The notes beneath the pieces were generated by a model. It did no database searches. It saw only the letters and a program-made list of their open reading frames with translations, and had not been told where the DNA came from. From contig NC_087261.1 in assembly GCF_037042905.1 (NCBI RefSeq), forward strand, positions 19,840,001-19,904,000: a stretch of DNA of 64,000 nt, given 5' to 3'. Source of the DNA: Lytechinus pictus. Taxonomy: Eukaryota. The position numbers were made by a program, and so were the translations under genes. Below, in pieces: positions 20,101 through 62,479 of this stretch (position 1 is its first letter; every line of letters begins with the position of its first letter).

Positions 20101-23100
20101 TACCAAAGAAGACCAATTTCTAATCCATCCTAATATACAGGGCCTTAAAACTAATTTCCTGCGAAAGTACCAGATTCTATTATGTGCATATGTTTCGTTA
20201 TATTAATTTCATTAATATATTTTATCCATACTTTCACTTGATTATTGTAAAGTAATCTCCTTGTATCGATTTGTCCGTAAACATTTCCTTTGCATAACCA
20301 TGATAACCGGACGCCTCACTTTCACATGATATAGTGGTTACGTTTGCCGTGCTGACGCCTGCAATCATTTTACTTATAGAATAAAATGAAAGGAAATATG
20401 AATTTAAACGTGTTAAAGGTGTTATCGACTTAAAATAAATTTATCTAAATAAATAGAGTAAATTTCTCTGAGCAAAACACCGAACTTTCATCAATGTCTT
20501 ATAACAAATAGCGGAGTTATATAATTTTACACTTAAACGAGATCTTGTGAAAATAGTTTTCGAATATGGAATTCCCTCCCTTCCAATGTAATTTCTAGCA
20601 CAAATGTTACTGCATTTAAAAATTAAAAACAAAACTCAAAAGTTCACTTGTAATTATGTATGCCAATTAATCACATAATTCATTTCCACACCCTTTCCCT
20701 GACCCCCCCCCCCCCCCTCCCCTCTCTTGTAGGTTTACCGTCTTATTTCTTTTGTATTGTTCGTATTTATTATTGTTACCTTTTCACTTTTATGTACGTT
20801 AATATATATGTATTGGGTGTCCCACTCATCAAGCTTTGGCTTTTAGGGGCACCCTAATCATTTAAACTATATTGTACATTCATGTATGAATTTGTATATA
20901 TTTTGGTTTATATATTGATTTTTTAAATGATTGAATAAATTGAATTGAATTGAATTGAATTGAATTGAAAATAACACTTCCCATTTGTAAAGGTACAACA
21001 GCGGATTGTCGTCGAAGTTGAGACTGAATGCGAGCTGGCAATATGGAGGATTACTGACGATCATGAACACTACCTTGGATGATCAAGGGGACTATACTTG
21101 TCAGGTTGCAACATTGATGGGCTTTGAAGACAGCATTATAACACTTACAGTTTACGGTAAGTTCAAAAGTTCACTGCAAAATATCCGAAAAATACAACCA
21201 CCCCTAAAGCCTACTAGCTAAAGTCAAAGTTTAAGTTTATAAGCCCAAAGATGTGACCTATAAAGAACTACATTGGAGTGAATGGCACAGAACCTCAAAA
21301 CTGACTTGATCAGTTCAAATATATGGCGCTATCGTGGCTGTTTTTTGTTTTTTATGTAACACAGATCAAATAATCTTTTTGGAGGGTATTCATCTAAACG
21401 TTATCTATTCATTTTTGTAGAGATATATCAAGGAGTTACCAGCACTGGTAACCCCTTGGTTATATTCATATATGGCATTCATTTCAGCCGTACCACGGTA
21501 TCTTCAAATCTACGACGCAAGCCATCAACTGATCGACCACACATCACCTTTGCAAATAGCTTCAGGGGAGCCGTACATCATCTTTTGCGCAGCCTTTCCA
21601 GCATCCAGCCCGGCAGCTAACCTGAGCTGGCAACTTGACCCAACACTGAAAGTAGCCCGTAACATGATCTACGCCGCACCGGAGAACGTAACATCGTTAA
21701 CCAGGCCCTCATCATCGTCGTCTTCGGCGAGGGGATGGGAATTCTTCGCTACGGAAAGGCGGCTTGTCCTGACGCCGAGGGATGAAGACCACGGAGCGAT
21801 CATCCGTTGCTCTTGCGATCATATTGGGTTACGTGAGGATTTATCCGTCTCCATCACACTGAGTGTGCTAGGTAACTTTATATCAAAACTTCTCTTCAAT
21901 GGGTTTCTTTTATAAGAAGAAGTAGGAAAAGAGTGTACACACAATCTGCACACACCCCACCTAGACACACACATGCAATTTGTTTCTATGTTTTTAAATT
22001 CAATTTAATATGGGCTTATCATTATATTTCATTTCAATTGTTTATACAGAGTGAGTCAGAAAAAATGTCCCACTTTTGTAAAGTTGAATTGTTTAAAATA
22101 TGAATATTTAATCATTAGTTTCATGATATGTCTTGATAGGGGTATCCTCCAAGTACACTCAGGTACCATTTTCATTTGATCCCCTGCACGCATGACTGAA
22201 CATCGGACAATCTTTAGAAGACTGTCAGATCTCACTTGCGCCAAGTTACTGGGTGATGAATAAAACAGTGCTTTAGACAAAGACAGTCAGACAGACAGAC
22301 TGGTATGCTCACACACACACACACACCCACCCTCACAAACACACAAACACACACAACACACATGGTAATAACTGGTTCATAATTTTCTCTTTTCTGATTA
22401 AGCATTGATTTTTAGCAAGATCGCTGAATGTTTAAGTGGCAATTCCCGACAATCTTTCCCCTTTAAACACATTCACTATCACCATCATATCATCATCATC
22501 ATCCTCATTGTCATCATCTTGATCTTGATCTTCATCTTCATCATCATCATCAAGTGCACATAAATCCAATATGCTGGTTATGTCTTGTGTTGGTTAACAA
22601 TGAAAATTTACAATGGATGTCTGTGCTTTTGTTGCACATGCCTATAAAAGGGCTTGCCTGATTTGGCAGCAGTCACTTGAGCCTCTTTTTACAGTAGCAA
22701 AAGTACACGAATCATGGTTCGTCCTCAATTCACACCACAACATCGGTCATTTATGGTCACCGAGTATGCAAGGACGGACTGTCTTCGTTCAAAAGAGTGT
22801 TTTATTCCCCACCATGTAACTTGGCGCAAGTGAGATCTGACAGTCTTCTAAAGATTGTCCGCTGTTCAGTCATGCGTGCAGGGGATCAAATGAAAAAGGT
22901 ACCTGAATTTACTGGGAGGATACCTCTATCAAGACATATCATAAAACTAATGATTAAATATTCATATTTTAAACAATTCAACTTTACAAAAGTGGGACAT
23001 TTTTTCTGACTCACTCTGTACAGTCGTTTCTGTAATTAACAGGATAGTGAAATCAAGTATGTGTTTATTTTTTTGTCTCTTAATTTCGTCATGATATCAA

Positions 23101-26100
23101 TGATACTAGGTAGAATTTATAAAAACTAAAATAAAAATGATTGACAGCATATTTGATCAATCAGAGAAAATACGAGTTTGATTTTAAGGATAAATCTTAG
23201 GATCTCGTACCTTTCCTCGGCTCCTTTTTTGTATTCTTTAGTTTTTTCCCTTTCTCTTTATCATCTTCTTCCTGTAATTCTTATTCCTTCTAATAATTCA
23301 TTCTTTACCTTCCTTCCTTCCTTTGCTTGATTTCATTTCCTTTTTTTTCTTCTACACACCCATTTCTTTGTCTCTCACAACTGCAATTAGTAAGATTCTG
23401 GCACTCTTATATAGGCTTGTATATTTGATGGAGTTGGAGAATAATATGGCCGACACAAAATAATTTACACACCTCTCACTTTGTGGGCAGTTTCTCCGAG
23501 TTACATCCGGGTATACACCGGTGATTTTCGGCCTCTGACTGACACCGGAAGCTTAAACGTTTCACAGGACAGTGAGGTGTCCTTCGTCTGCATGAGCACC
23601 AGGTCGAGGCCGGCAACCGTCCCACGATGGTGGATTGGCGATGACGAGATTACAGACGATGTGACAAGGACGGTAATCCCGTACGACGATCAAGATCTCT
23701 ATGATGTATCCAGTCGCCTGACCTTGGGAAAGGTTCTCCGACAATATCATGGCAAAGCTATTGCTTGTTCGGCTTCCGCTTTGAATCTTCGACCTGTGGA
23801 AACGAATTTCACTTTGCTCGTTCTGGGTAGGCACAATTTGATTTTTGACCCATGACTAAACTTGTTGGCATGTGACTAAAGGGACTTCCATAAAGACAAG
23901 GTGTCATTAGCACGCGAGTTTAAATTGTATGATTTTTATTTCATGCCGGAAAGAAAGTTCAGGTCGGGTAACCAGAATCCTGTTAAATGGTCTATCGTTA
24001 CTTGTTTGAATCCCATTAGCTTACATTCACCCATATGAAAACTAGTTAAATAGATTTTAGATTTCTTCAAAAAGCTCTACAATAGATCACGACGTGACAA
24101 TTTGTTTAAGTGGTCAGTTTGCTTCTTAATAACCTATACCTATGCAGGACCACCGGACCCTCCACAAATAAGAAACATCTCAGTGGCCGTCACGGAGGGA
24201 AGATCAAGTTCTTTAGAGTGCGTCGCCTTGCATGGGTACCCTCCAGCAGACATCGAATGGCTCATTGACGGATATTCTACTTCCGATTTTGATACCGTGA
24301 TTGTGAAACGATGGCGATATGATCTCGTAAGCCGTTTGACAATTCACCCAAACCGAACTATGAACGGGAAAGAAGTCACCTGCATCGTCCGTTTTCCGTC
24401 AGTCCAACCAACGGAAATGAACAGTTCGGTGTCTTTGAATGTTTCATGTGAGTTCAGTGCAGGCATTTCCACAATATTTTAAGTTAACTTTTTTGGCAGA
24501 TTCCCTGACCTTGACATAGCTCTTCACTAACACCTTTCACTGTTTCATGCTTCCGATTTATTTTTGGGAGAGGCTTTATATTCTCACTCGTAGACCATGC
24601 CCCACGCAAACCACATTCATCGCACCAGTATCACATTATACCACATATTCTTCGATCCATGTGGATACTCCTTGCAAATCGATAGTCAATATCCTACGTT
24701 CAACCTTGGACATTTGCACATTATGTTAGGAATCTGTCCTTTCGATATGACAAGATGGGTTTCTTTATGCTTGTGTCATTTAGTTTTAGATTTCTCGTTG
24801 TAGTAATTTTTTTGTGTTTCCGATGGCACATTCCGGTCCGTGCAGGATATGATGCACTGATAGCGCCTATAGACCCGAAACGAGTTTGCTCTAACCCAGG
24901 CCAAAAACGTAGAAAAGCTGATCCGCGACCGAAATAAATACTAAATACAATTTTGACAAAACCCAATTTCTGAGATCGAGGCTAGACCGAAGATCCAGCT
25001 AGTTTTTAAATAATTTGATTGTACCTTAATTATTAACAATGATTTGCACTTATGGTAATATATAGATCACCTTTACAATGATTTGTATTCTTTTGCCTCG
25101 TCTATTGCCAACAGTTTGTCCATACAGCCTTTCCATATCATGCCAACCCGTGTCGGCTGGCCAACCCAGTGACATCACTTGCAGATCTGCACTGGGAAAC
25201 CCCGCCCCCAGCTTACTGTGGACCCTCGACGGACAGGGGATCGAAGACCTTCATGTCAATCAGTCAGAGACTTCAAGTAGCAGTAACACCACAATGGGGT
25301 TTTTCTCTTCGTCTCTATTTTCGAGGAGTTTCGACGCCGATGACCACGGGAAGCTCGTCCGGTGCTGTGCAGCGCGGAACGTGATTTTGGGATGCACTGA
25401 ATATGTCTGCGCGGAATGTCCACTGAATGTTTATTGTAAGTAATCTACTCTTCTTCTAATCAATAATTGTTCCATATCTACCAAAGATAGTTTATTTTGA
25501 TTACTGACACTTCAGGATACGATCTAATTTCAATATATCAGGAAATAAAATAAGAAGGTGACACATTAACAAGGTGCAAGTGACATCTCCAATGTATTGA
25601 AGCTTCCTGTAAATGGTGCGCCAAATGTTTACATTTCGTTGGCATAAAAGCTTGCAAATACAGCAAGATTTAAAGATGGAAGAGATTGTTTGTTGATAGA
25701 ACGACGAAGGATTTTTCCCCCAATTATTCTTTGATATTAGGTAAACCGAAACTTCTCCAATCTGGAAATGACATGGTAAAGTCGCGCCATGAGTACTACA
25801 TTACCCTTAGTTGCTCAGCCCGTGGGAATCCATACCCCTCGATAGAATGGTACAGTCCATGGATGGTTCAAGATTCGCCCATCAACGCATCTACACCTGG
25901 CGTCATCTCACTGGTCGATACCATTATTGACGGGGGTGGGTCTGATCGGGTGACTGTGCAGAGTACATTGGTGATCGAATCTTCGGCAGGAATTGATGCA
26001 AAGGTTCAAGGGGTCAGGTGCGAGGCTTCGAACTCCATCGGCTCCACTTATACAGTATCCTTCTTTGGCAATGCATCGGGTAAGATTTTGTAAACTGAAT

Positions 26101-40435: not shown

Positions 40436-42744
40436 CTAATTTTCATTCTCATTTTCGTCCAAACCAGATATCAAAAACCCTCGTGTGACCTTGCCGTCTG
40501 GATCGACGGTGTTCATTAGGTTAAATAACTCGCTGGTTTTTATCCACTCGCTCTGTCCTTCATACCACACATCCAACAAAAGAAAGCGGTCAGTGTCGCG
40601 GTGGTAAGCGGCCAGCGGGCTGAAATGTCCTACCTGAATAGGTCCTGAATCGGTCGTGAAAGTCTGAGGGTATAAGTAGTTGACCATCACTCCTTGCGAA
40701 GAATCGCCGTGCGACAGCGCCTGGATTGCCCTTGACCGGAATGTATCGACATCGATAACCTTGGCATAGAACTTAGTCGTTGGAACGCCATGCGCCTGCA
40801 ACAAGCACTGGATTTCGTAAAGCGTGGCGCCTCTTTTTAGAACTTCTTCGCAGTTTACGATATTTGTCGTCTCTTTGAATGAAAACATGTTCGTATCTCT
40901 GTAAGGAACTTCGGTGACGTCACATGTGGAATGGTTGGCTGGATTTGGAAACTTTATCCCGAAGTATCTCGCGCTCATGAGGAGGGCGGCGGATTGGATG
41001 CCGCAAAAGCCCATTTTCTCCTGAAAGCTGAAGATCCTGATGAGGAGTGTCTGCCGGAACGCGGCGTCTTCTAGCAAACCTTCTCCCTCTGGAGATTTTA
41101 GAGGAACTTTACCTGGGCTCCACCAGTCTCTGTTTGGAAAGATGAATAATTTGACAAAATTCACAAAGGTACTTTCATAAATTATCTACAACGTGCTCTC
41201 GTCTTAACCCACATTACCTCGATTGTCTCAAGTAGCCATATTACATTATCCGAGTTTCCTTGCTGGAGGGGGCTGGAGGCAGAGATTAGATACTATGCTC
41301 GGCCAGTAAATGTGATAAACCATTATATTAGTCTCTGTCTGGTACTATCATTATTTCAAGCATTCTTTTTATTGTGACAATCCTTCTGAATAGGGTTTGT
41401 CAGTAGTTGTTGGGAAGAGTATATTTTTGCCTATATTATGACACATTTTCAAAATATAATTTTTTTTATTGCGTAAACAAAATTATTGCCAAAAGTATAA
41501 AAAGAAAATGATTCTTTAAAAAGAATCATATCAATATTACAAACATGACGAAGGTCGTGCTATTACGAGCCCAGAGATCCGATTATAACACTGGTTCAAG
41601 ACATTTAGCATATTTCGCATTTATGGATCGCGTAAACATCATTAATACTTCTACGATGATATTCTTTCTGTCTCTTTAAGGTTAGATTACATGTTCGACC
41701 GACAACCATGGTGATGGCTTTCTAAAATCACCAATTATCATAGTGCGCTATAAAAAAAAGTGGTTATGTAAAATGTGACTGTTCACTAACATATTCACTT
41801 CATAAAAAAACATGCAGCATACAAGATGTTTTCTATCTCATTGTTAATAATATATCGCATTCGTGCATTGCTCTCAACAGACTATTCAATTATTGTTCAC
41901 TGTTTCATTGTAAGTCATTTTTTTACGAAATGTCCCTGAAGAATATGACCATAAGGCACGAGAACGAAAAGTGATTTACCTCCATGGAAAACATTACGAT
42001 CATATATAAATCATGCTGCCATCATTACCTTCATTAAGATCTATATAGCAGTATAACTGCACTAATTGAGCAGCCATGCATGCAACGTAAATCGATGCAA
42101 ACGCCACTGACTGAATTGAACCACACAGTAAGTTTACTAATTGCTATCAGGGTATACCATGGTATACGATGATGACACCTGTATGATACCCATACATGTT
42201 CTTATTATGTTATGTTCGCCACTGTTGTACCATAGTAAGATCCATGATCATTTTGACTATATAGAGCTAAGGTTAGCCCCATAATGGACACACCAATTGT
42301 ATGACAAAAATCTGGAAATGGCTCCTTTCACCGGCGCCTGGGGTTAGATGCTAGAAGGACTCGACCCCCCCCCCCCCCAATCCCGGTACTGGTTTTCCAA
42401 GACATGTCTACACGCCATTAACCATGTTAACATCTTCGGGACTAACGACCTAGGGGGGGCTGAGAATGGCTTCTCAATTGTAATGTCATGGATTGATAAT
42501 AAGATTACAAATTGCACAAAGAGCTATTGGTTAAAAAAAGATACGGATTCCGATCTGGAAGATCAACATTCATCCGTTTCTGCGTAAACAACACCACTGA
42601 CTATCATAAAAGACGTATGAACACATAGATATGTTAATTGAAGATCTACAAATAAAATATATGATCTAAAAATATCAGATGATGTCATTTTCTTTCCAGC
42701 TTATTACTAAATGCTTACCTGATATAGGTCAAAGCGTTTCCCAT
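40436..42744 (-). CDS. PCS: Phytochelatin synthase family (glutathione gamma-glutamylcysteinyltransferase-like), catalytic domain only, 239 aa
   Basis: Exon 1 42744-42719 (ATG GGA AAC GCT TTG ACC TAT ATC AG|gtaagc) splices in phase 2 to exon 2 41129-40436 (tttccaaacag|A GAC TGG); total 720 nt. PCS-family motifs FQEKMGFCG (oxyanion Gln + catalytic Cys), VMVNY, GHFSPLAAYH (His), FLLLDV (Asp), MNTVD..TRGF. Confidence 0.9.
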
Positions 42745-50587: not shown

Positions 50588-51218
50588 AGTCCGCAATAAT
50601 GAACCTATTTAGTAATGTAGTTAAACTTAGCAACATCTTCACATTTTCTAGCAGCCAAGTTGATTATCTATTGATGTGACATGTTTCCACGGCTCCTCTA
50701 AGAGACTCACACAGTCCTAGGTCAGCATAAAAACTTTAAAATGCCTATTTTTAGCCACTAGCCCACACAGTATAGCATATAGGGATGGACCAATATGCAT
50801 ACATGATTTTATGGAGTATTTAAGCCTTATTTTTCATTTCTTAATGAATTTTGAGGTAAGTTTTGAGCAATGTCTGTGATAATATTAATGCTAATAAATT
50901 AAGGAAATGCTTTTTAGTAGAAATGCTGTTTCGTTTTTTGTTTGTTTGTTTTTTGTCCTACCTACACAAGCTGCATCTTTTGAGCTGGTCCTCTCTGTGA
51001 TTTGAAACATTGACATTTTTTCACCCTGTATAGCCCACCACTATTCAAATGCAGCAACTTTAACTTTATCATCACATCTGAACAAGTTCCTATTTATGAA
51101 TTCAAGAATCTTGCTTGCATCTCTTACAATGTAACTGACAGTGGGTCCAGGACATATCACTGGATAGATCAAAATCTCACATTCTCATTCATTTTTCCCC
51201 CTCTCCCCCTTAAGCAAA

Positions 51219-54200
51219 ATGACATGGACACGACACCATGTAGAGGTAGCTGAAACATGTGCTCATAACCATCCCCACACGAGTCACCTCACCGAGTGCA
51301 TCAGGGTTTTCATCAAGGATTCTTACTCCAGAACATTTCAATCTGGTAGCAGCGGTCAGATGTTTGGATGCATGGTCAGCTGGGGCTTGGGGTGCATTGT
51401 CTTCCCTCTCTGTCTTGGTGTCTTTCAGGTAAGCCCTTGGGGGTGTTTCATGAAAGTTGTCAGCCCTGACTTAATTGCCAGTGCTGACAATTTCAGTGAA
51501 ATCCTTTGCACTTTGATTGGCTGAGAGACACTAGCCTCTGACTGTTACTATAGTAATTGTTGGAAAAAGTCAAGTTGTCAGTGCTGTCAACTTTCATGAT
51601 ATGGTCCCCATCTCTCTGTATGATCCACTCAGACACCATTTTGGAAATTATGCAGGAGGTCTGCCCTTTAAAAGTCAAATCTCCTGGTACCATAGTAATA
51701 CGTTTGAATCTTTTGCTGAAATTTGACTTGTGAAATATTGTTCCCATCTAAGCAATTATTTGTTATATGGGGTGTTATGGAAGAAAATATTTGCAATCAA
51801 TTGTGAATTTCTGTTGCAAATTTACGACTGACGGATCAATAGAGTACCGAAGTGTGACGTCATCAATTTTCACTTTTGCATTTCAGCGCTTTTTATACCA
51901 TATTTTGGGAGAGCATGATGAAAAACCCTCACATAAAGAGAAATAGCAAAATTTCAGTGACATGTGTTCTGTAAACCTAATCTGACACCCGCGTGGTAGG
52001 TTCGATTGCCGTAAATTTGGTATCAAAATGTGCGGGAAGGATCAGAGAAAAAGTAATGGAATTTCATTTCGAAATAGTGAGGCGTTAGGAAGTACCAACC
52101 AAAATTTGACAGGGGGGGCATTATGCCCCCCCCCCCCCTCCCGGAGTATTAGGGTAAATTAGATCTACGTTACAGTTCATCCATGCCCGAGATATGTTGG
52201 ATAAAACCTCTCAGTAGTTGTAGGGAGATGTAATGGACCAAAACAAATCACCTTTTTATTTGTTGAAAGGCCTTATTAGTTGCAAATCATATACTCAGTA
52301 ACTCGAATGAGAGGCTGATTTTGCCCCTAACTTAAATCATACAGCTGCATTATAAGTGGCAATTAGCCATGTATAGTAGATATGTAATGTCGCTAGAAAG
52401 AGTAGCTGGACAAAAAAAACTACAAAAAAAGAGAAAACAAAGAAGATGTACAGTATTTTTGTATATGCACACTACAGAAGGACCTGAATCGGTTACATTT
52501 TATGAATTATCAAAATGCTTATGTATGCAATTTATCAATAAATTTGCATGACAACAAACTGTACTTTGAGATGTGCATCAGACTAGTTGTCATATTTTGA
52601 AAGCCCAAACTGTAGTATCGCCAATTTATGCGATGATCCCTGTGACTATACCTGTGACCATGTTAAAGTTTGCTGATGTGGTTTACGGTACACCATGTGA
52701 AGTGTTGTAGAAACAGTGGAAAGGAGAAGAGAAGAAATGGATAGGCGAGAAAGTGGAGATTTGAGAGTAGAGTATTCTTTCTTGAAAGTAGTCCTGAAAA
52801 GGACTGTAAACCAGGAAAGATTGATGAGTTGAGAACAGCTTGAGTAGTAGAGCTAGTGAGGAGATGCTGGCTTGAGTCGGCGAGTAGAGATGATGAGTAG
52901 TAGACTCGACGTTTCGGGCAGGTTGACTGTCCGTCCGTGTGTCCGTCTTCACACTCCTGAAGACGGACAGTCAACCTGCCCGAAACGTCGAGTCTACTAC
53001 TCATCATCTCTACTCGCCGACTCAAGCCAGCATCTCCTCACTAGCTCTACTACTCAAGCTGTTCTCAACTCATCAATCTTTCCTGGTTTACAGTCCTTTT
53101 CAGGACTACTTTCAAGAAAGAATACTCTACTCTCAAATCTCCACTTTCTCGCCTATCCATTTCTTCTCTTCTCCTTTCCACTGTTTCTACAACACTTCAC
53201 ATGGTGTACCGTAAACCACATCAGCGATTGTACATACCACCATGCAAACCTTCAAACAACATATGTTAAAGTTTGCAATCAATCGCAAACTGGCATTGGC
53301 CAATCAAGGTCTATGTTCAGCAAACCTGTAGTCTCATCTACACTGTACCAAACTTTTTTTATTTTTATGATTGATCACAAATTGTTTGTGTTACTAGGGC
53401 CTATGAAGTTTTTCACTCTTTAATGAAAAAGCATATCATGTATGATCTGTTGAACTTTGTCCCTTCTTCCTACCATGCATGTTGTTGGTTTTATCTTTTT
53501 AGATCGGTGTATTCAAACCATTATCAGTGACATCCTCTCATCTGCTGGCTCCTGCTATTGGCCTGTGTTCTGTTGCTGTGTCAGGCGTAGCTTCATCAAT
53601 CACTGTCTTCGCTGCATACTCAAACTACAATGGTAAGAATGTTTTCTCGGGCCTGTTAGTACTGGAAACATAAATGGGCCTTAGAAAACCCATGACCAGC
53701 CTCCCCAAAACTGACAATAGGTCACCAGGGAAAGTTCTCTGTAAATAATCAAAATATTTTCATACTGTCAAAGTTTGAAGTTGTATAACTAAATAAAACA
53801 CAAGATACATTAATTAATTGTATCATTAATTGAATTGATACTCATTATCAGTCTGCTCATTGTTTTTTTTTTTTGTTTTTTTTTTTTTTTTTTTACTGCA
53901 TTATGTTTTCCCTCGACAGTATCTGAATCAAGAGAGCTGGATATGAGGTTCACAGATCTAGTTTGCTATGGACTTGGGTCTGCTGCAATGTTCAAACTAC
54001 TCAGGGGAAAATTTTCATCTGTTCTTCCAAGTACTATTCTAAAACCAGGTATAACATAGCACTACCCATCCTAGATCCCATTTTATGAAGACACTGCTAT
54101 AATATCAAGTGCACCATTTCTATAATCAATTTTCAATTTCAATTTATTTATTTACCATCTTTAAAAATAAGTATACATAAAAATCTGTCTGATATGAAAT

Positions 54201-57200
54201 ACAAATACACATTGTTTATAAATGGAGGGATACCCTTAATAAGCACAGTGCTTGTAAGCAGGGTCCCAACATACACTACGGTATACATTTGAGGTTAACA
54301 TTATAATACAAATTATACATGATAACATTATAATACAAATTATACATTAAAGATACATTTTTTTTTTTCAATTCAATTTATTTTTCATTCTTCAACATAA
54401 TACAAATAGTTATTATTGTTACATATGTAACAATAAACACCCACATACACATAAATTAGAGAGAGAGAAACAGAAAGAGAGGGGAGACAGTGTAGGTGGA
54501 AGAGGTAAAAGAAAATAAAAAATTAGTTTACTATTAGCCAATCAAATTGATGGATTTCAGTAGCTTTTAACACTTATGCATATTTGTTATTGTAACAAGT
54601 TTTATGGAATGGGGCCCAGGTTGGTAATAAAAGTCTAACTGAGCAAAAACTTTAAACAAAAAAAAATCTTATTTAGGTAAGCCATTGACTTTTAAAGCCT
54701 GTCTAAAGCTTTGATGAAGGATTAATAATGTGAATTATACAGGTTCTGCAGAAACTACAGTTACCGTTGAATCTTATTCAATCTGTAATTCTTTGTGAAA
54801 TTTGAATATTTTGCACTCTCTGTCATAACTGTTTGTACTTTTCTTTTAAATAGAACCATTAAGTACTTATAATGCATTTTTGGCTGGGAGCACCTTGAGC
54901 ACCTAACAGAGGTGGATTAATATTATGTGCACTACATAAATAACCTATAGTATTATACAAATGATGCACTGATGTGAGTGCATTGGCAGATTTTGTGAGC
55001 ACAAGGCACAGCCGAGTGGGTTTAGACTAGTTTCCATAGTTACCGCATGCTCACTAGTCCTACCGATGCACAAACAAACCTGTGTATCATTTGTTTTATA
55101 GAATGGTGGAATTTTTTTTGGCTAAAATTACATGTACTTGTGCAGGATACCCATTCTATAAATTATTATTGTTATTGTCTCAAGGGGCGTTTGCAAAGAG
55201 AGGTATTCCAGCAACAAAGAACTACGCTAGCAGTGGCAAGAAAGCAACATTGGCAGCCATTGGAAGTCGGCATGGCTGTCACACGTGTGGGAAACGCTGG
55301 ACCGCTAAGAGCTTCATTGCTGACCACCAACCACCATTATCAGTAAGCTTCTTCCTCTCTCTATTATTTACTATTATTTGTTTGTCGTCACCTGTGCCTG
55401 GGGGGCGAAAAGCGAACTGAATCACTATGACCCGCAGGTCTCTCCTCCCGATATAACTGATTGGGGGGAGTGCAGGTGAACCACTTCACCGGGGTTTCCC
55501 CCTACTCTTATACGAATAGTCATTAGTGCAGTGGGTTCTTAATGTGCAAAGGTGGTGACTCTCCTCTAGACGGGGCCTCCATTTAACGTCCTATCCGAGA
55601 GACGGAGTGTTTTCCATCGTAACATAGCCTGCATCTATGAAACATGGGAGAGACGTTTACACACAACGCACTGACTTCAGTCATCCGCCCGGGGTGGACT
55701 CGAACCCACGATCTTTGGTTCGATGGGCAGACGCGTTCCCGACTGAGCCAACAACGCTCTCCTCATTTCCCTTTTTTCTCTATTCTTTCTCACTCTTTCA
55801 TGTCCCCTCTCCATTCTTGCATGTAGTGTTATGTTTCCGGTTTTCTATTACGGCGAATGTTTCATGAAGCAGCTGGTCAGTGATGTTCACCTACAAGTTT
55901 GCTCTTAGCCAATCAAATGCTAGGATTTCGGTAGCTTATAACAAATGGTCAATGAAAATGAACCATTTATGAAATGCTCACATGGTTTGTCGCGTAAGTG
56001 CAAGATTGTACAAAGCTACAAATTTCACCACTGACATAAATACTTCGGAGCCTAATGGGGTATTGTAAGAGACTTGCACTCTCATGTCAATGTTTGGTCG
56101 CAAAATCAGTCATGAGTCTCAGAGTCTGGTATTTAAAGATAAATGTAAAAGTAGTTGCAGTAAACACTGATTTCACGAAAAAGTCTGTAAAACCAGGCTT
56201 AATTGTCACTATATCATCGAGGATCTAGATCTGGTACAGTTACATAAACTGAACTTTGTGAAATCTTGAAATCTACGCTGAAAAATGTTCACACTAAAGA
56301 TCACCAACACAGATAAGTGCACGTGGGACAGTGTATTATTATTGCTTTGAATGTCGGCCCGACGCTTGACCCGAATCCCGTGCTTATTTGCTAATTTCTC
56401 AGCAATTACACAATTTCTTCCAGAATCCTTTGGCGCATATTTTTTATTTATACAAACAGACACTTTGGTGGTCATTTTATTGGATTCTGTACGAACTCAT
56501 TTTGAAATCGTTACCACAACTGGCATTTATCTCTAATTGCAAATTCGCAATCAAATGCTTGTCTGCGTCTTTTAACAAAAAATTAAAATCAACTTGTTAT
56601 TTATATATCAATCGACAATAAAGGAATGACACTTCACTCACAATAGTTGAATAATTGTACCTTAATTTATTAGGCAGCTCATGACTTCAACCGCGGCGCC
56701 GTCAAGGGGCGAATTACCATCGTTGCATTGGCACTGAAACCAATCCACCACAAGGTGGCGCTATAGCACAAACAACAAACATTGGCGTGACCACTTTGTC
56801 TTTTTCCCTTCCAACTGTTAAAACTGCATATGGATTGGTGATTACAAATCATTAGCAAAGTAGCAAAGTATTAAACTTCTAATTCCATGTGAACAGGTAC
56901 TACCTTACAAAAAGTCAAAAAAACGATGCCATATCTCTATACAGAATAAAAATCTACCAACCTCTAAAAGGTATAAAAATTCCGTATAACAATAAATAAT
57001 GCTTATTAAAAAACAACCATTGTAATTATTCTTAATAATACAAATATCAAACCCTTACAGTACTAATGTTGAAAACGTTACATAATTACTATCAAATTAA
57101 AATCAAAACATCTCATCTTTACCTATCAGCAAGGATATAACCTGGTAATATAAACACCACACCTACATATGTGCACTTTCCGAAAGATATAAACACACAT

Positions 57201-60200
57201 AACATTGCATAAAATGTGTAACATACTGTTAGGGGCACTAACATGCTTTCTTAACCAAAACCATAAGATGGAACAATTTACATCACAATACATGTACATG
57301 TGTATCTTCAACATCCCCATAAAATCAAGCATTCTAAACAGGCGGTAATTAAACATTGACACCATGTCACAAACTAAACCAAAAACAAAACCAAATCAAA
57401 TGTCATTTCAAGTCAATCATTTAAAAAAAATGTTATTCAAAACAATGAAACTGTCAATGCTAGTCCCTTAAAAAAACTAACAATCAATGCCTTTAAGTAT
57501 AACTCATATTATGGGAAAAAACCAGCCCCTTTTGTGCTAAACCATTTAAAGGCAAACCAAAAACAGCAATACCATACATTACGCCAAAATAGTGAAAACG
57601 TAGACGTTATTGGCTCAAAATATATCCTGTAAATGAAAACAAATAGAATTACATACCTGTTAAACTTAAGAGCACACATACAGGAAAGGAAACCATAAAC
57701 AAAGTAAGTGCATGTTAATCCCAAACGCTACTATCAAGTCCCATGTCATCTAAGTAATCTAACCTAAAAACACTATACTAAACAAATTATAAAATTGCCA
57801 AACTATGCAATAGTTAAATAATGTTCTTATTAAATAAAGACACAATTCATAACCAAAATAAATGTATTGATAAACCCATTACTGTAAAACCATTCCATAA
57901 ATAAACAGGGACACTTAGTAATAAAACATCTGCAAAACAAGAAGTCATTAACTTCACGAACATTAAAATGGACCCTTCCACAACCATCAAAATAACAAAA
58001 AGGATTCCATACATAGTAATATACACAAGTGCACAGTCAGGTGAACTGTTGTCACACTGGATATCACATAGTCACGCTGACGAAATTAAAAATAACGCCG
58101 TTATCTTGTAGAAAACAATCAAATGCTAAGGTAAAAGGCATACATATACATCCATAAAAGTGTGTGGTGAAAATAATTATGTGAAATACAGCAAATGTGG
58201 AAATCTTGAAACACACCCTGGAAAAATTATGTTAGGCATATCAAATACAAATCAATTAAAATATGGATACTTGTATATGATTTACATGTCACTTCCCCTA
58301 AACAAATAAAAGTAGCACACACACAGCCAGTAAACATTAAAATGTCTAAGCAAACAACAAACTTCAGTCTAAAAATCAAATTTAATGACAAACCAGTAGG
58401 CATAACAAGCACATTAAAACATTAACACAATCAGCTGTACCACTCCAACCCGATGAAAGGCTAATAAAGAAAAATGTGAAAAACATAATTCCTTAAAAAA
58501 ATAAAGGCATAAGCATCACAACAAAAGTAGCAGTATACAGTTAATAATAGAAAAGGGAATATATCTTGCAAAAAATGTGGGAAAAAAAACAATAGTACTG
58601 TATATTCTAAAACGATACATTATGTATGCAATAAAAACAATCAATTATGCAATAAAAATGTAAAGGAAAGAAATTAATTGTTACCATACATAATAAAGAC
58701 AATATATCATACATGCAATTAACAGTGTCCATAGTATGCTGCATCATTAATTGTCCATGAACAAAGAAGTAAAACAATAGCAGTCAATATAGGATGTTTA
58801 TCCCAGATGTCACTATAAAAAGTGCAAATGTCCATCTCTCAAAATCAAAGGGAGGATACAACAGTTCAATGGTACCTTGAATCAATGTCTGGTGGACGAC
58901 CAGGAGGGGGTCCTATGGACAACCAAAATGTTGAGGGGCCTGGCCGTTGTTCTGAAGGTGGAGCGATGCTCGCAGGCGACGTCCTATGAACACGGTGACG
59001 AAAAGCCAAAAGAACAGTTCCATGGGATGGGTTGTAAAAACCAGTCACAGAAACAAAGGGGGCATACAGTCTATTGCCAACATCCGGCGGGGGACCTGGT
59101 GGGTCAATAACCACCGTGGTGAGGTCATCATGAGTAGGGATACTGCGTCCTTTGCGAACATCCGGGGGGCGACCTGGTGGGTCCATAACCTCTGTGGTAA
59201 GGCCTTCACTAGTAGGGATACTGCATCCTTTGCGAACATTTCGGGGGCGACCTGGTGGGTCTGTAACCTCTGTGGTAAGGCCATCACGAGTAGGGATACT
59301 GCATCCTTTGCGAACATCCGGGGAGCGACCTGGTGGGTCCATAACCTCTGTGGTGAGGCCATCATAAGTTGGGTCACAGTGTTGGTAGCAAGGGACCAAG
59401 CACTCACCAATGAGAGGAGAATCCATCACTACAGGATTAGAATTAGAAATAGTAGCCAGTGAAAACTTGTCAAAATCAGTATTCTGTAGACATTCTGCTT
59501 TACTTAACAGGTTGGCGTGTGTAAGGTTGGGTTGGGTGTCTATAACAATATCCACAGCGGGACCAGACGTTGTGAGCTTCACGTCATAGTCAGGAACCGA
59601 AACTAGCTCGGACTGAAGTTGCTGGCATGCAGCGACATCGTTCTGGGTAGCAGTGACTAGGTCAACCGACGAGCTGTTAATGACTTTGATAAAAGCAGTG
59701 CCTGATGGTGAAGGGTCACACAAGGGCGTTATGACGGAAGGCACGTATTGCAGTGTCTCCATGCCACCGGGCATATGCGGAACGACCGGAGGTACGTGTG
59801 GCAATTCGTCGGTGCCACCGGACATACGTGGAACGATAGAGGGCGTAAGTGGCAATTTCTCGTCGCAACCGGATATGAGTGGAACGCTAGGCGCATGTTG
59901 CAATTTCTCAGTGCCACTGGGCATATCGGAAATATGGTCATGTGAATTGATATTGCGTATCGACAGCGAAGCGTCAGGACCATAAGTGTACGACGGTCCA
60001 TCACCTATGGTGATGCGGTGCTTAGCAGGACGGATGGTAATGTCATGTAACTCTATGAATGGAATTCCTGCATGAACTTGAATAAGCGGTGAGTCTACGA
60101 CATACGCTTCGAAAAGCAAGTGTTCCCCATTCCTACTTAAGGTAAGACTTGTCGTACCAATAACTGGAAGGCGCAAGGAACGGTTAGCATAACACACCGA

Positions 60201-62479
60201 CCGAAGGGTATCTGTAGGCCTGATGACAGCACCAAGACTTTGAACGCTGGAAAGACCAATGAGGTTCTGTGGTGAACCACTGACAAGTTTGACCTGGACG
60301 AGCTTTTGACCATGAAAAAGATTGACACTTGGAGACGGAGAGGAAAGGCTGGCCACTGAAAACTGTGGCGAATGTGTAACCTTGGAGTGGTACTCACGTA
60401 ACTCCGATGAGTCACTCATATCATCGCCGAGAGAATCTCCTTGGATTTCATGCGGTCTGCCTGACTCTGGCAAGACCTCGGCACGACCGAAAGAACTATC
60501 TATTAAGCCTGTTCTAACAGGCAAAGCATCCTCACTATCCGAAATAGAACAATCATAATCATCATAGCGGCATTCATCACTCTCAGATAAATCAGAGACA
60601 GAGTCAGCATATAGAAGTTGACAATCATCTTGATAATCATCACTTACATCCAAATACTCTGACCAAACTGATTTGGAAGAAGTCAAGCAATTTTGTGTAC
60701 TGATACTTCTTTCAGACTTTTTCAAGAATGAGCACTCACTTTTGTTATGACTACAATTATATTTAGATACTGAATAGGAGGGATTGTCACAAGTAGGTCC
60801 AACGTTTGAGCAAGAACTAGATCTGTATCCAACACTATTTGTGTTATGTGTACTAGCTTTATGACTGTCTTGATTATGTACTGTACAATGTAAAACCCTA
60901 CTTGCTCTAGGAAAGGAATGAGAAGGGTCTTCAATGACAGACTCATCATGATCAAAACAATATTCATCATCACATGCATAATCATCATTGTTTAAATCAT
61001 ACAAATCAAGAATGTCACAATCACTCACAATCATATAATTTTCTTTCTCTCTTCCGATTTGGATTAATGTTGAATTATCATTAATAATTTGTTCATGTTG
61101 GTTATGTTTAGTGTAGTAGCCTCTCTCTTGGGCATGATACTGGCGGCCGCTCTCTCGGGCCTGTGGAAGGTACCGGTACATGTACCGGGGATAAGCCATC
61201 GTAAAAGGCTATGTGTGGGGATGAGTGTTAGCCGTGGCGTGAGAAGACATGATTAACAACGAACTACAACTACCTATCACGAAAAATGATGCTTTTCGAC
61301 CGAATGAACGCTAGGGTAGCAGTGGCCATCCTATTGTGTGGATAGACAGGGATCGAACCTGCTGCCACCACGACAATAAAGGAATGACACTTCACTCACA
61401 ATAGTTGAATAATTGTACCTTAATTTATTAGGCAGCTCATGACTTCAACCGCGGCGCCGTCAAGGGGCGAATTACCATCGTTGCATTGGCACTGAAACCA
61501 ATCCACCACAAGGTGGCGCTATAGCACAAACAACAAACATTGGCGAATAGTAAATTAGCAATAGAAAATTTGCAGTTGATTGCAAATATTTTCTTGCATC
61601 AACATCTTGGTCAGGCTATGAACTTTACAGTAGGCCTATAGCCCACACCCATGCGTGGGGAAGAACTTTTATAAGAAAATACATGTAACTCTATCAAAGA
61701 TAGACAGTGCATAATCTCTGAAGCCTTCTGGGCATTCGTGTGTCGATACAACTTAAATATATAGTACCAAAGGAAGAGTGTTCTTGTGACACAAAACTTT
61801 TTCGTTTTCTAAAGTTTGGGGAGTAAAAATGGCCATAAAGTATTGCACAGGCACAAAAAAGGGGAAAGTATGGATATGAAATTACTGTAATTCTTAATAT
61901 GAAGTTTGCATAATTATTTATTACTATATTAGTTTCATTCAATAAATTGTGATAAGATCCTGTATTTTCATATGAATAATGAATAACACATAACCTCTTC
62001 AGACATTGATCTTCAAAATGGAAGCCAATTCTCCTCATACTATTAAAGTGCTCCCCAGTGCTTTATGCTTTACATTGACAAAGTTCAAAGGGCCTGAAAA
62101 CGTGGTCACGTATGGATAATTTTTCTCACTATAGAACATCGATGTCATCTTTTATAATTCAGGCCTATACATAACCAATTATTTATCCTTGTTCCGACAG
62201 TTACCAAAGAGAACGGATATCATCCACACGCTATCCAAGCTGTTCCGCCCCCACGAACCGGAGTACCGATTCTACCCCCATTGTCCCAGCTGCTCACGGG
62301 TCCAGATGACGTACCTTGGTGCGATGGCCAACCAGCGCACCACCGACCTCACCAAGGGGCGCGTCGTACGGATGGATTTCAATCATATCGTCACGCATGC
62401 CATGTCGTTAAGACTCTATCACCTCTATCTACCTTTTCCTGTGGTTCTGGCTGCTGCGTACAATGCATGTGCGGGATAA
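51219..62479 (+). CDS. Uncharacterised 301-aa membrane-associated protein with C-terminal Zn-binding HNH/His-Me-finger-like domain (GCHTCG...DHQPP...FYPHCPSCS)
   Basis: Coding exons 51219-51428, 53503-53632, 53920-54048, 55185-55342, 62201-62479 with canonical GT-AG and phases 0,1,1,0; 906 nt in frame to TAA. A probable non-coding first exon ends at 48311 (G|gtgagt), with an acceptor at 51214. The gene model is solid; the domain call is by motif recognition only. Confidence 0.82.
52674..53262 (+). mobile_element. Penelope-like element terminal fragment in inverted (fold-back) arrangement, 14-bp TSD
   Basis: Arms 52672-52935 and 52962-53225 are reverse complements (264 bp). TSD ATGTTAAAGTTTGC at 52660-52673 and 53263-53276. 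Contains a minimal hammerhead motif typical of Penelope pseudo-LTRs. Confidence 0.8.
52953..52993 (+). ncRNA. Minimal type-I hammerhead ribozyme motif
   Basis: Stem I ACUC/GAGU; core CUGAAGA(C); stem II GGACAG-UCAAC-CUGCCC with one A.C mismatch; GAAA; palindromic ACGU stem III; predicted cleavage after GUC (C52989). Confidence 0.75.
55362..55760 (-). mobile_element. tRNA-headed Deu/Nin-domain SINE
   Basis: Minus strand GAGCGTTGTTGGCTCAGTCGG (A box), GGTTCGAGTCC (B box), CCGTCTCTCGGATAGGACGTTAAATGGAGGCCCCGT...TTAAGAACCCACTGCAC...AAGAGTAGGGG (Deu/Nin core). Confidence 0.8.
56133..56536. mobile_element. Kolobok-like MITE (TTAA-type flanks); another at ~62982-63597
   Basis: ttaaAGATAAATG...CATTTATCTctaa termini; ttaaagggaatcca...tggattcccc in the second. 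Confidence 0.6.
58866..61199 (-). CDS. 777-aa retroelement ORF with degenerate retropepsin-like protease and tandem peptide repeats; no RT/IN
   Basis: KLVSGSPQNLI..YANRSLRLPVIG..FEAYVV..VHAGIPFIELHDITIRPAK is a retroviral-type protease fold with the catalytic D[ST]G replaced by VSG. 17-aa and 26-aa repeats follow. Confidence 0.7.
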   Translation of the reverse strand: MAYPRYMYRYLPQARESGRQYHAQERGYYTKHNQHEQIINDNSTLIQIGREKENYMIVSDCDILDLYDLNNDDYACDDEYCFDHDESVIEDPSHSFPRASRVLHCTVHNQDSHKASTHNTNSVGYRSSSCSNVGPTCDNPSYSVSKYNCSHNKSECSFLKKSERSISTQNCLTSSKSVWSEYLDVSDDYQDDCQLLYADSVSDLSESDECRYDDYDCSISDSEDALPVRTGLIDSSFGRAEVLPESGRPHEIQGDSLGDDMSDSSELREYHSKVTHSPQFSVASLSSPSPSVNLFHGQKLVQVKLVSGSPQNLIGLSSVQSLGAVIRPTDTLRSVCYANRSLRLPVIGTTSLTLSRNGEHLLFEAYVVDSPLIQVHAGIPFIELHDITIRPAKHRITIGDGPSYTYGPDASLSIRNINSHDHISDMPSGTEKLQHAPSVPLISGCDEKLPLTPSIVPRMSGGTDELPHVPPVVPHMPGGMETLQYVPSVITPLCDPSPSGTAFIKVINSSSVDLVTATQNDVAACQQLQSELVSVPDYDVKLTTSGPAVDIVIDTQPNLTHANLLSKAECLQNTDFDKFSLATISNSNPVVMDSPLIGECLVPCYQHCDPTYDGLTTEVMDPPGRSPDVRKGCSIPTRDGLTTEVTDPPGRPRNVRKGCSIPTSEGLTTEVMDPPGRPPDVRKGRSIPTHDDLTTVVIDPPGPPPDVGNRLYAPFVSVTGFYNPSHGTVLLAFRHRVHRTSPASIAPPSEQRPGPSTFWLSIGPPPGRPPDIDSRYH
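59077..59365 (-). repeat. 78-bp coding tandem repeat (~4 units, DGLTTEVMDPPGRPPDVRKGCSIPT)
   Basis: Repeated gacctggtgggtc..taacctctgtggt..ggcc..agtagggatactgc..cctttgcgaacat. Confidence 0.9.

Follow-up and report, generated by a model that had tools for sequence, protein, structure and literature searches.

This study concerns LOC129281084, a gene of the sea urchin Lytechinus pictus which lies in a stretch of 64,000 nucleotides (contig NC_087261.1, positions 19,840,001 to 19,904,000 of the forward strand, assembly GCF_037042905.1). The whole of this stretch is called the window below, and coordinates are counted from its first nucleotide. The explanation which best accounts for the observations as a whole, and to which we give a probability of about 0.7, is that the gene codes for a single-copy, expressed nuclease of the NGO1392-like clade, that this nuclease is fixed to a membrane, and that its family entered eukaryotes early from a bacterial toxin cassette. 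The C-terminal half of the protein (residues ~150-262) is, judged by sequence similarity, homologous to the tips of Rhs, Tc-like and HINT toxins.

The NGO1392-like or Tox-SuFu-Nuc clade of HNH nucleases is characterized by the conserved residues CxxC, DH, CxxC and Q (PMC3482391, Table). The entries for the clade in the same paper give delivery by MafB, the type V secretion system (T5SS), TcdB/TcaC and PVC (Photorhabdus virulence cassette) systems, links to HINT, PVC-metallopeptidase, RHS and FilH, and the immunity partners Imm-SuFu, Imm13, Imm21, Imm33 and Imm38. In the passages which Zhang, Iyer and Aravind devote to it, the clade was already reported in animals, plants, stramenopiles and apicomplexans in 2011-2012, and a role in DNA repair was suggested for the eukaryotic proteins (PMC3113570, PMC3482391). 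By its sequence LOC129281084 is a eukaryotic member of this HNH/EndoVII clade and thus belongs to a family already known computationally: residues C188, C191, D203, H204, C237, C240 and Q244 make up the signature. Its bacterial relatives also have the immunity partner, as Imm21 is found beside a Burkholderia RHS toxin and after the nuclease in a single open frame (see below). The prototype of the clade is NGO1392 of Neisseria gonorrhoeae (a MafB-type toxin), and the urchin protein is assigned to it on the basis of the signature, the architectures, the immunity partners and the phyletic range as published. The urchin protein and the published clade are alike in the signature, the HNH/EndoVII fold (modelled here), the toxin architectures, the Imm21-type immunity and the eukaryotic range. 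They differ in that the published passages on the clade describe the nuclease domain only and do not mention N-terminal helices, a eukaryotic tail or a tail anchor in protists. In our literature search we found no later paper on a eukaryotic member and no bench study of one, and the clade goes unmentioned in the classification of His-Me fingers from 2017.

The gene has five exons on the plus strand with 906 coding nucleotides in total, i.e. 301 residues and a stop codon (Table 1). All four introns are bordered by GT..AG, and the window is free of N. The spliced product is residue for residue the RefSeq protein XP_054773048.2 / XP_063968045.1, 'uncharacterized protein LOC129281084', so that the model is already in the public L. 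pictus annotation. In the orthologue of L. variegatus 12 of the 301 residues differ (96% identity between the two Lytechinus species). Only one locus was found when the 812-Mb L. pictus genome was searched with the exon peptides and with the family profile.

The splicing was examined in raw reads of two stranded RNA sequencing (RNA-seq) runs depleted of ribosomal RNA and in two Logan contig sets, which were compared with positions 51100-55500 using ~6% of each run. The joint 51428/53503 was seen in 40 and 42 reads in the two runs, 53632/53920 in 34 and 40 reads, and 54048/55185 in 53 and 48 reads. In run X19 another 59 reads continue beyond 55342, and as their consensus is exactly the first 30 nucleotides of exon 5 (62201-62230), exon 4 is confirmed to be joined to exon 5 over the 6.9-kb intron which interrupts the HNH motif. 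The read depth is ~40-68 in exons and ~0 in introns outside repeats, and the first mates lie on the minus strand, which means that the transcript comes from the plus strand. An initial annotation of the window, made from its letters and its open reading frames, had proposed that five exons splice cleanly into 301 residues, and the intron borders, the identity to RefSeq and the RNA support for all four junctions bear this out; joining of the exons in transcripts had been named there as a check. The same annotation had placed the 6.9-kb intron inside the catalytic motif, and intron 4 does lie between DHQPP in exon 4 and CPSC in exon 5; the motifs it quoted (GCHTCG, DHQPP and CPSC) are all located in spliced exons. 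Contamination or a recent transfer from a bacterium to an animal was considered and rejected: the gene has four spliceosomal introns confirmed by RNA in a chromosome-scale context of 812 Mb, which excludes contamination, and there are orthologues across echinoderms and in Saccoglossus, and full-length relatives in oomycetes, algae and alveolates.

In 45 full-length eukaryotic sequences G90, S151, G157, G183, G187, C188, H189, C191, G192, D203, H204, P206, P207, C237, C240, Q244 and H275 are invariant, and G143 and P150 are nearly so. With 29 bacterial domains added, in a eukaryotic and bacterial set of 56 domains, the residues G183, C188, H189, C191, D203, H204, P206, P235, C237, C240 and Q244 are still invariant, which includes the whole of CxxC, DH, CxxC and Q. 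The Asp-His pair is invariant across more than 130 eukaryotic sequences. Conservation of DH in orthologues had been asked for at the outset, and it is found for D203-H204 and for all four cysteines, in the 45 eukaryotic proteins as in the 56 domains.

A word-index search with the open reading frame of exon 4 gave no candidates; an ESM Atlas features search gave leads only for exon 4 (bacterial hypotheticals, HNH, GH-E) and no match for exon 5. An exhaustive phmmer search with exon 4 gave 240 proteins at E <= 1e-3, among which the true relatives are the single-stretch matches. The multi-stretch matches could be taken to mean that the protein is a C2H2 zinc finger; they were judged to be false positives mimicking the C-x2-C-x12-H spacing, and this identity was rejected. 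Residues 27-48 of exon 4 match C2H2 fingers in the PDB weakly (E 0.014 or worse), and the C2H2 pattern C-x2-4-C-x12-H-x3-5-H does not occur in the LOC129281084 protein.

The structure was modelled with AlphaFold2 and the family alignment, giving a mean predicted local distance difference test score (pLDDT) of 85 and a predicted template modelling score (pTM) of 0.82 for the full-length model, and a pLDDT of 81 for a model of the domain; both models are confident. In the modelled domain a helix (173-186) is followed by the first zinc knuckle, beta1 (201-205) ending with Asp-His, an inserted helix, beta2 (232-236), the second CxxC and an alpha helix (238-256). The C-terminal domain is thus predicted to have the beta-beta-alpha layout of HNH/EndoVII (beta-beta-alpha-metal) nucleases. 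In an exhaustive VIA-align comparison with the domain model the top five were the ZRANB3 HNH domain (Z 3.9), T4 endonuclease VII (3.7), GVE2 HNH (3.7), Gme HNH (3.6) and McrA (3.5), and below these came the HNH domains of Cas9, IscB, Cap5, TagI, Hpy99I and PacI; the comparison with the full-length model was dominated by generic helical matches. In the AlphaFold database structural matches were found to an 'HNH endonuclease' (E 1e-5, root mean square deviation 2.6), the tip of an RHS core protein and the tip of a HINT protein. A nuclease-type fold was what the initial annotation expected from structure prediction, and the beta-beta-alpha model with five HNH/EndoVII proteins as its best solved matches agrees with this, at weak scores.

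The family profile was also compared to the sequences in the PDB, where the best match was Gme HNH (4h9d; E 0.013) with CHxCG, DH and PxCxxC in register. In this nicking endonuclease, Gmet_0936, the zinc ligands are C38, C41, C73 and C76, and the active site consists of D53, H54, N68 and N77 (PMC3765158). The profile alignment pairs D203-H204 with D53-H54 and C188/C191/C237/C240 with C38/C41/C73/C76. The urchin domain and the zinc-ribbon HNH enzymes (Gme HNH, McrA, GVE2 HNH, ZRANB3 HNH and T4 endonuclease VII) are thus alike in two CxxC pairs for structural zinc with a 'CHxCG' first knuckle, in an Asp-His at the end of beta1 followed by 'P', and in a second CxxC which opens the alpha helix. 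They differ in a helical insert of 25-35 residues which the urchin family has between beta1 and beta2. A second difference is found in the metal site: where Gme HNH has the metal ligand Asn77 (His in many HNH enzymes) the urchin protein has Ser241, and the Lys three residues later in Gme HNH aligns with the invariant Gln244. The bacterial members have Ser or Ala at the position after the second CxxC. The metal site of the clade is therefore non-canonical, and we infer that Gln244, one helical turn from Ser241, supplies the metal ligand.

The initial annotation placed the GCHTCG/DHQPP/YPxCxxCS variant at the tips of bacterial Rhs and polymorphic toxins, and this was correct: the domain is found at the extreme C-termini of Rhs, Tc-type and HINT polymorphic toxins. 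The expected bacterial homologues thus exist, with Imm21 genes adjoining. The phylum of Pyxidicoccus fallax, which we take from its name to be a myxobacterium, was searched with the profile in 301 genomes, and the domain was present in 11. In three of these it makes up the last ~100 residues of open reading frames with RHS repeats of 2044, 2050 and 3896 residues, the longest of which also has SpvB and TcdB_toxin_midN domains. When the eukaryotic profile was aligned with hhalign to the tip of the 2044-residue frame the probability was 99.3% (E 6e-21), and in BLASTP the urchin protein has 35% identity to the same tip (E 3e-14) in an alignment which begins at the "PSxLxPG" linker (P150). A tblastn search with the urchin domain matched a Burkholderia plasmid gene annotated "RHS repeat-associated core domain-containing protein" (E 9e-6), and directly downstream of this gene lies an "Imm21 family immunity protein". 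Other plasmid matches are a "polymorphic toxin-type HINT domain-containing protein" and a DNRLRE protein.

In one genome of the phylum survey (G296, locus L032, 712-2571) a single open frame of 619 residues carries the nuclease at ~360-445 and then Imm21 at 457-600. This is either a toxin-immunity fusion or an immunity gene which starts in frame inside the open reading frame.

In another type of bacterial protein the domain occurs twice in tandem, in some cases with an eCIS_core (DUF4157) N-terminus, with or without GNAT; eCIS_core corresponds to the PVC-metallopeptidase in the published description of the clade. In Xanthomonas campestris the tandem protein (L006, 8001-8783) adjoins tssF-tssG-clpV, and in Pyxidicoccus fallax (L012, 7845-8702) it lies between tssC and tssG; in both cases the neighbours belong to type VI secretion clusters. 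The N-terminal and C-terminal copies are separate clades in the tree described below, hence the duplication is old. The Xanthomonas protein had no relatives among GTDB contigs, and a tblastn search of phage genomes gave no match, so the reported mycobacteriophage members were not reproduced. Searches of the urchin genome for eCIS_core and Imm21 gave no match, and the positive controls likewise gave no signal.

The N-terminal half was described in the initial annotation as three hydrophobic segments rich in small residues. Two of them stand out clearly in a Kyte-Doolittle scan (residues 47-79, mean 2.09, and 81-110, mean 1.87; rich in Gly, Ala, Ser and Cys), while the third (~124-140) turned out to be weaker. 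The model turns the hydrophobic segments into long helices, helix 1 being residues 45-74. Conservation from urchins to protists covers the hydrophobic region, the linker "GGRFxSVLPSxLxxPGAFA" as well as the tail "TH..SLR.YHLFLP.P". Many protist members end with an extra hydrophobic helix resembling a tail anchor, and several members of the family carry the label 'Transmembrane protein' in UniProt. The same layout is found in the bacterial Rhs tips, in which the "DPxG" at the end of the Rhs core is separated from the nuclease by one to four Gly/Ala-rich hydrophobic stretches and then by "PSTLEPG.." or "STLRPGPFARNPIRA". The structural matches to bacterial proteins extend into the helices as well, covering residues 73-263 of the query in the case of an RHS cluster and 82-258 in that of C2V4Y5, an entry of 191 residues. 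That helices precede the nuclease in the eukaryotic proteins as in the bacterial tips is an addition to what the passages on the clade by Zhang et al. contain, and it opens the possibility that helices and nuclease were inherited whole, as one cassette.

Relatives of the urchin protein are found in echinoids (Lytechinus, Strongylocentrotus, Diadema), asteroids (Patiria, Acanthaster, Asterias), an ophiuroid (Amphiura), a holothurian (Apostichopus), crinoids (Anneissia, Antedon) and the hemichordate Saccoglossus; the family, single-copy in L. pictus, is thus present in all five echinoderm classes and in one hemichordate. Further relatives occur in oomycetes (Aphanomyces, Saprolegnia, Achlya, Thraustotheca) and in the stramenopile alga Triparma. 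Structure searches gave additional uncharacterized eukaryotic proteins similar over their full length, several of which, judged from their accessions, presumably come from green algae, chromerids, apicomplexans and oomycetes. Atlas clusters of structural relatives are labelled Cnidaria, Bacillariophyta and Chlorophyta. The full architecture of the urchin protein is common to oomycetes, algae and alveolates, with green algae, diatoms, chromerids and apicomplexans among them.

A quick maximum-likelihood tree was calculated from 195 domains and 113 columns and rooted at the midpoint. In it the tandem bacterial copies stand apart from a second group, in which the Rhs-type tips with a single domain are joined by every eukaryotic sequence with a single domain. 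All of the eukaryotic sequences fall into one cluster, sister to the single-domain Rhs tips (82-84 in the Shimodaira-Hasegawa-like approximate likelihood ratio test, SH-aLRT). The 14 ambulacrarian sequences with names share a cluster with two unlabelled ones, which adjoin Saccoglossus and Apostichopus, and echinoids, asteroids, crinoids and holothurians each form a group of their own. The tree is consistent with a single early entry into eukaryotes followed by vertical inheritance in Ambulacraria, and among the 195 domains there is no sign of a separate transfer into animals. The gene was not recently acquired by an animal. Of the earlier proposal that the gene is a domesticated, possibly horizontally acquired nuclease, the homology to bacterial toxin tips has stood; an event specific to animals has not, as any transfer would be ancient and shared with many protists.

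The bacterial relatives are delivered toxins of Rhs, Tc-like, eCIS and T6SS-linked (type VI secretion) systems, and toxin tips likewise carry hydrophobic helices in front of the nuclease. One could therefore imagine that the eukaryotic protein is itself a weapon or an executioner, in which helices resembling glycine zippers enter the membrane of a target or an organelle and the nuclease destroys the nucleic acid of microbes, of infected cells or of cells undergoing programmed death. This is at variance with a single-copy gene showing no lineage-specific expansion, with the low divergence (96% between the Lytechinus species, and the gene is kept in all echinoderm classes), with the lack of a signal peptide and with the steady expression in bulk RNA. 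The passages on the eukaryotic members in Zhang et al. argued likewise from conservation (PMC3113570), and we consider such a role to be very improbable.

Several observations weigh against a membrane-fixed nuclease of this origin, and they concern the fold, the active site, the helices and the tree. The VIA Z-scores are all below 4, which is weak, so that the assignment of the fold rests on consistency over the matches. Foldseek gave nothing significant against the PDB with either the full-length or the domain model. Pfam gave no match with single exons or with the full protein, and none above threshold with the 56 domains, where two matched HNH_5 (PF14279; best E 1.4e-4, 22 bits against a cut-off of 27.5) and one HNH (PF01844). 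The tree is weakly supported, being quick and based on 113 columns, with SH-aLRT values of 80-84 at the key branches and a midpoint root. The canonical metal-binding Asn or His after the second CxxC, as read from the alignment, is missing in the urchin protein (Ser241), and a conserved hairpin Asn could not be aligned in the family.

These last two points are what one would expect if catalysis had been lost and the domain were a zinc-stabilized module of HNH shape serving as a membrane-tethered binder of nucleic acid or protein, like the Tox-GHH domain of teneurins. The weak resemblance to C2H2 fingers and the tail found in eukaryotes only, whose invariant H275 suggests added functions other than those of a toxin, point the same way, and there is a precedent for domestication of a toxin with loss of the active site (PMC3417536). 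The combination of Ser or Ala with an invariant Gln is, however, common to bona fide toxin tips which keep their immunity genes, and is for this reason taken as the normal active site of the clade and not as eukaryotic decay. An Asp-His pair kept without exception in the more than 130 eukaryotic sequences would also be hard to explain without catalysis, and we regard a dead enzyme as unlikely. The comparison with teneurins is instructive in other respects. Both are cases of an HNH-fold tip of Rhs/YD toxin origin kept by animals in a membrane protein (the membrane being inferred here), but teneurins belong to a separate HNH clade and retained the complete YD shell while losing the active site of the nuclease, whereas the urchin family kept the tip only, i.e. 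helices and nuclease, with the predicted catalytic residues retained.

As to the helices, hhalign found no significant similarity to the bacterial tips upstream of about residue 135-150, and since the similarity stops there the shared helices are an architectural parallel whose homology is not proven. Insertion into a membrane is suggested by hydropathy alone, and the high pTM could mean that the helices form a compact helical domain packed on the nuclease. This leads to a third alternative, a conventional soluble nuclease of DNA repair in which the hydrophobic segments are buried and do not span a membrane. Repair is the role proposed in the passages on the clade in the literature (PMC3113570, PMC3482391), and the model with a pTM of 0.82 does show helices and nuclease as one compact unit. 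A buried domain would have to accommodate two adjacent helices of 27-30 residues with a hydropathy of ~1.9-2.1 and a composition rich in Gly, Ala, Ser and Cys; it leaves aside the terminal helix of the protists, so like a tail anchor, and the 'Transmembrane protein' labels in UniProt, and neither a nuclear localization signal nor a partner domain of repair proteins was seen. We find this alternative hardly credible.

If the reading of a membrane-fixed nuclease is correct the protein could work as follows. The four cysteines would hold a structural zinc, His204 would be the general base activating water, and Asp203 and Gln244 would hold the catalytic divalent metal; the enzyme would be a non-specific nuclease of DNA or RNA, as is presumed of the toxins. 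The N-terminal helices, the hydrophobic C-terminal tail and, in protists, the tail anchor would fix the nuclease to one face of an internal membrane, with the basic nuclease domain on the cytoplasmic-type side, to which a two-helix hairpin would return the N-terminus as well. The N-termini are variable and short, which argues against a classical matrix or stromal presequence. This location would limit the access to nucleic acid and so take the place of the immunity protein. The family would have entered eukaryotes early, probably from a bacterial toxin cassette which already carried hydrophobic helices, and would then have descended vertically within Ambulacraria. Nuclease activity, membrane insertion and roles in turnover of organelle nucleic acid, cell death or defence, as proposed in the initial annotation, are in this sense conjectures drawn from the amino acid sequence.

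A more specific version, which we put forward tentatively and with more doubt than conviction, is that eukaryotes domesticated the whole post-cleavage Rhs cassette (Gly/Ala-rich membrane-entry helices, 'PSxLxPG' linker and HNH domain) as a resident integral-membrane nuclease. It would guard one face of an internal membrane, e.g. by degrading stray organellar or foreign nucleic acid, with its location replacing the immunity protein. If this were true the family would be a class of membrane-anchored nuclease which has gone unrecognized, with conservation reaching from algae and apicomplexans to sea urchins. The sole published role, DNA repair, was proposed before it was noticed that the eukaryotic members have the build of membrane proteins. 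The family is in any case a clean and datable case of a bacterial weapon module which was kept in eukaryotes with its putative catalytic residues. Since L. pictus is genetically tractable and the gene is single-copy and expressed, localization and knockout are feasible, and the same protein occurs in apicomplexan parasites, oomycete pathogens and marine algae, to which a function established in the urchin would probably apply as well.

Table 1. Exons of LOC129281084 and the interrupted HNH motif, in coordinates of the window (nt, nucleotides).
Feature	Position	Strand	Content	Support
Exon 1	51219..51428	+	residues 1-70; poorly conserved N-terminus; hydrophobic helix 1 begins at residue 47 (nt 51357)	start ATG, GT donor, RNA joint
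Exon 2	53503..53632	+	residues 71-113 and one base; end of helix 1; Gly/Ala/Ser-rich hydrophobic helix 2 (86-112, nt 53548-53628); invariant G90	AG/GT borders, RNA joints on both sides
Exon 3	53920..54048	+	residues 114-156; weaker hydrophobic/amphipathic helix 124-140 (nt 53949-53999); conserved linker 'GGRFxSVLPSxLxxP'	RNA joints
Exon 4	55185..55342	+	residues 157-209; first half of HNH domain: helix 173-186, GCHTCG (nt 55274-55291), beta1 with putative catalytic D203-H204 (nt 55322-55327), then QPP (DHQPP, nt 55322-55336)	
Intron 4	55343..62200	+	6858 nt; interrupts the HNH motif; carries a 4933-nt long terminal repeat (LTR) element, 56613-61545	
Exon 5, first part	62201..62479	+	residues 210-301 and stop; inserted helix, beta2 (FYPHC), C237-x-x-C240 (nt 62282-62293), S241, Q244 (nt 62303-62305); CPSC..Q, nt 62282-62305	
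Exon 5, tail part	within 62201..62479	+	eukaryote-only tail with invariant H275 (nt 62396-62398); short hydrophobic C-terminal helix	

The length of intron 4 is due to the LTR-type element, which makes up most of it. The element has direct repeats of 175 nucleotides each (56613-56787 and 61371-61545) which are 100% identical, and it is young. It contains an open reading frame of 777 residues on the minus strand (58866-61199) without a Pfam match, which holds a 78-nucleotide tandem repeat (59074-59373). At the start of the same intron (55363-55500) the RNA depth is ~1000, with the first mates on the plus strand, i.e. antisense to the gene, and loose ends are numerous; the signal probably stems from a repeat family with high expression which is separate from LOC129281084.

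Intron 1 contains a perfect inverted repeat (52672-53225) whose arms of 264 nucleotides (52672-52935 and 52962-53225) are 100% complementary and separated by a spacer of 26 nucleotides, and which resembles a foldback element. RNA reads are found on both of its strands, together with joints between opposite strands, so the repeat, or copies of it elsewhere, is transcribed.

Two other features were seen upstream of the nuclease gene in the window. An open frame of 242 residues on the minus strand (40436-41164) matches the phytochelatin synthase domain PF05023 (E 5e-30), which points to an animal phytochelatin synthase gene. At 21472-26093 on the plus strand there is a series of exon-sized open reading frames with one immunoglobulin (Ig) domain of the C2-set/Ig_3 type in each, and these look like exons of a gene for a protein with multiple Ig domains.

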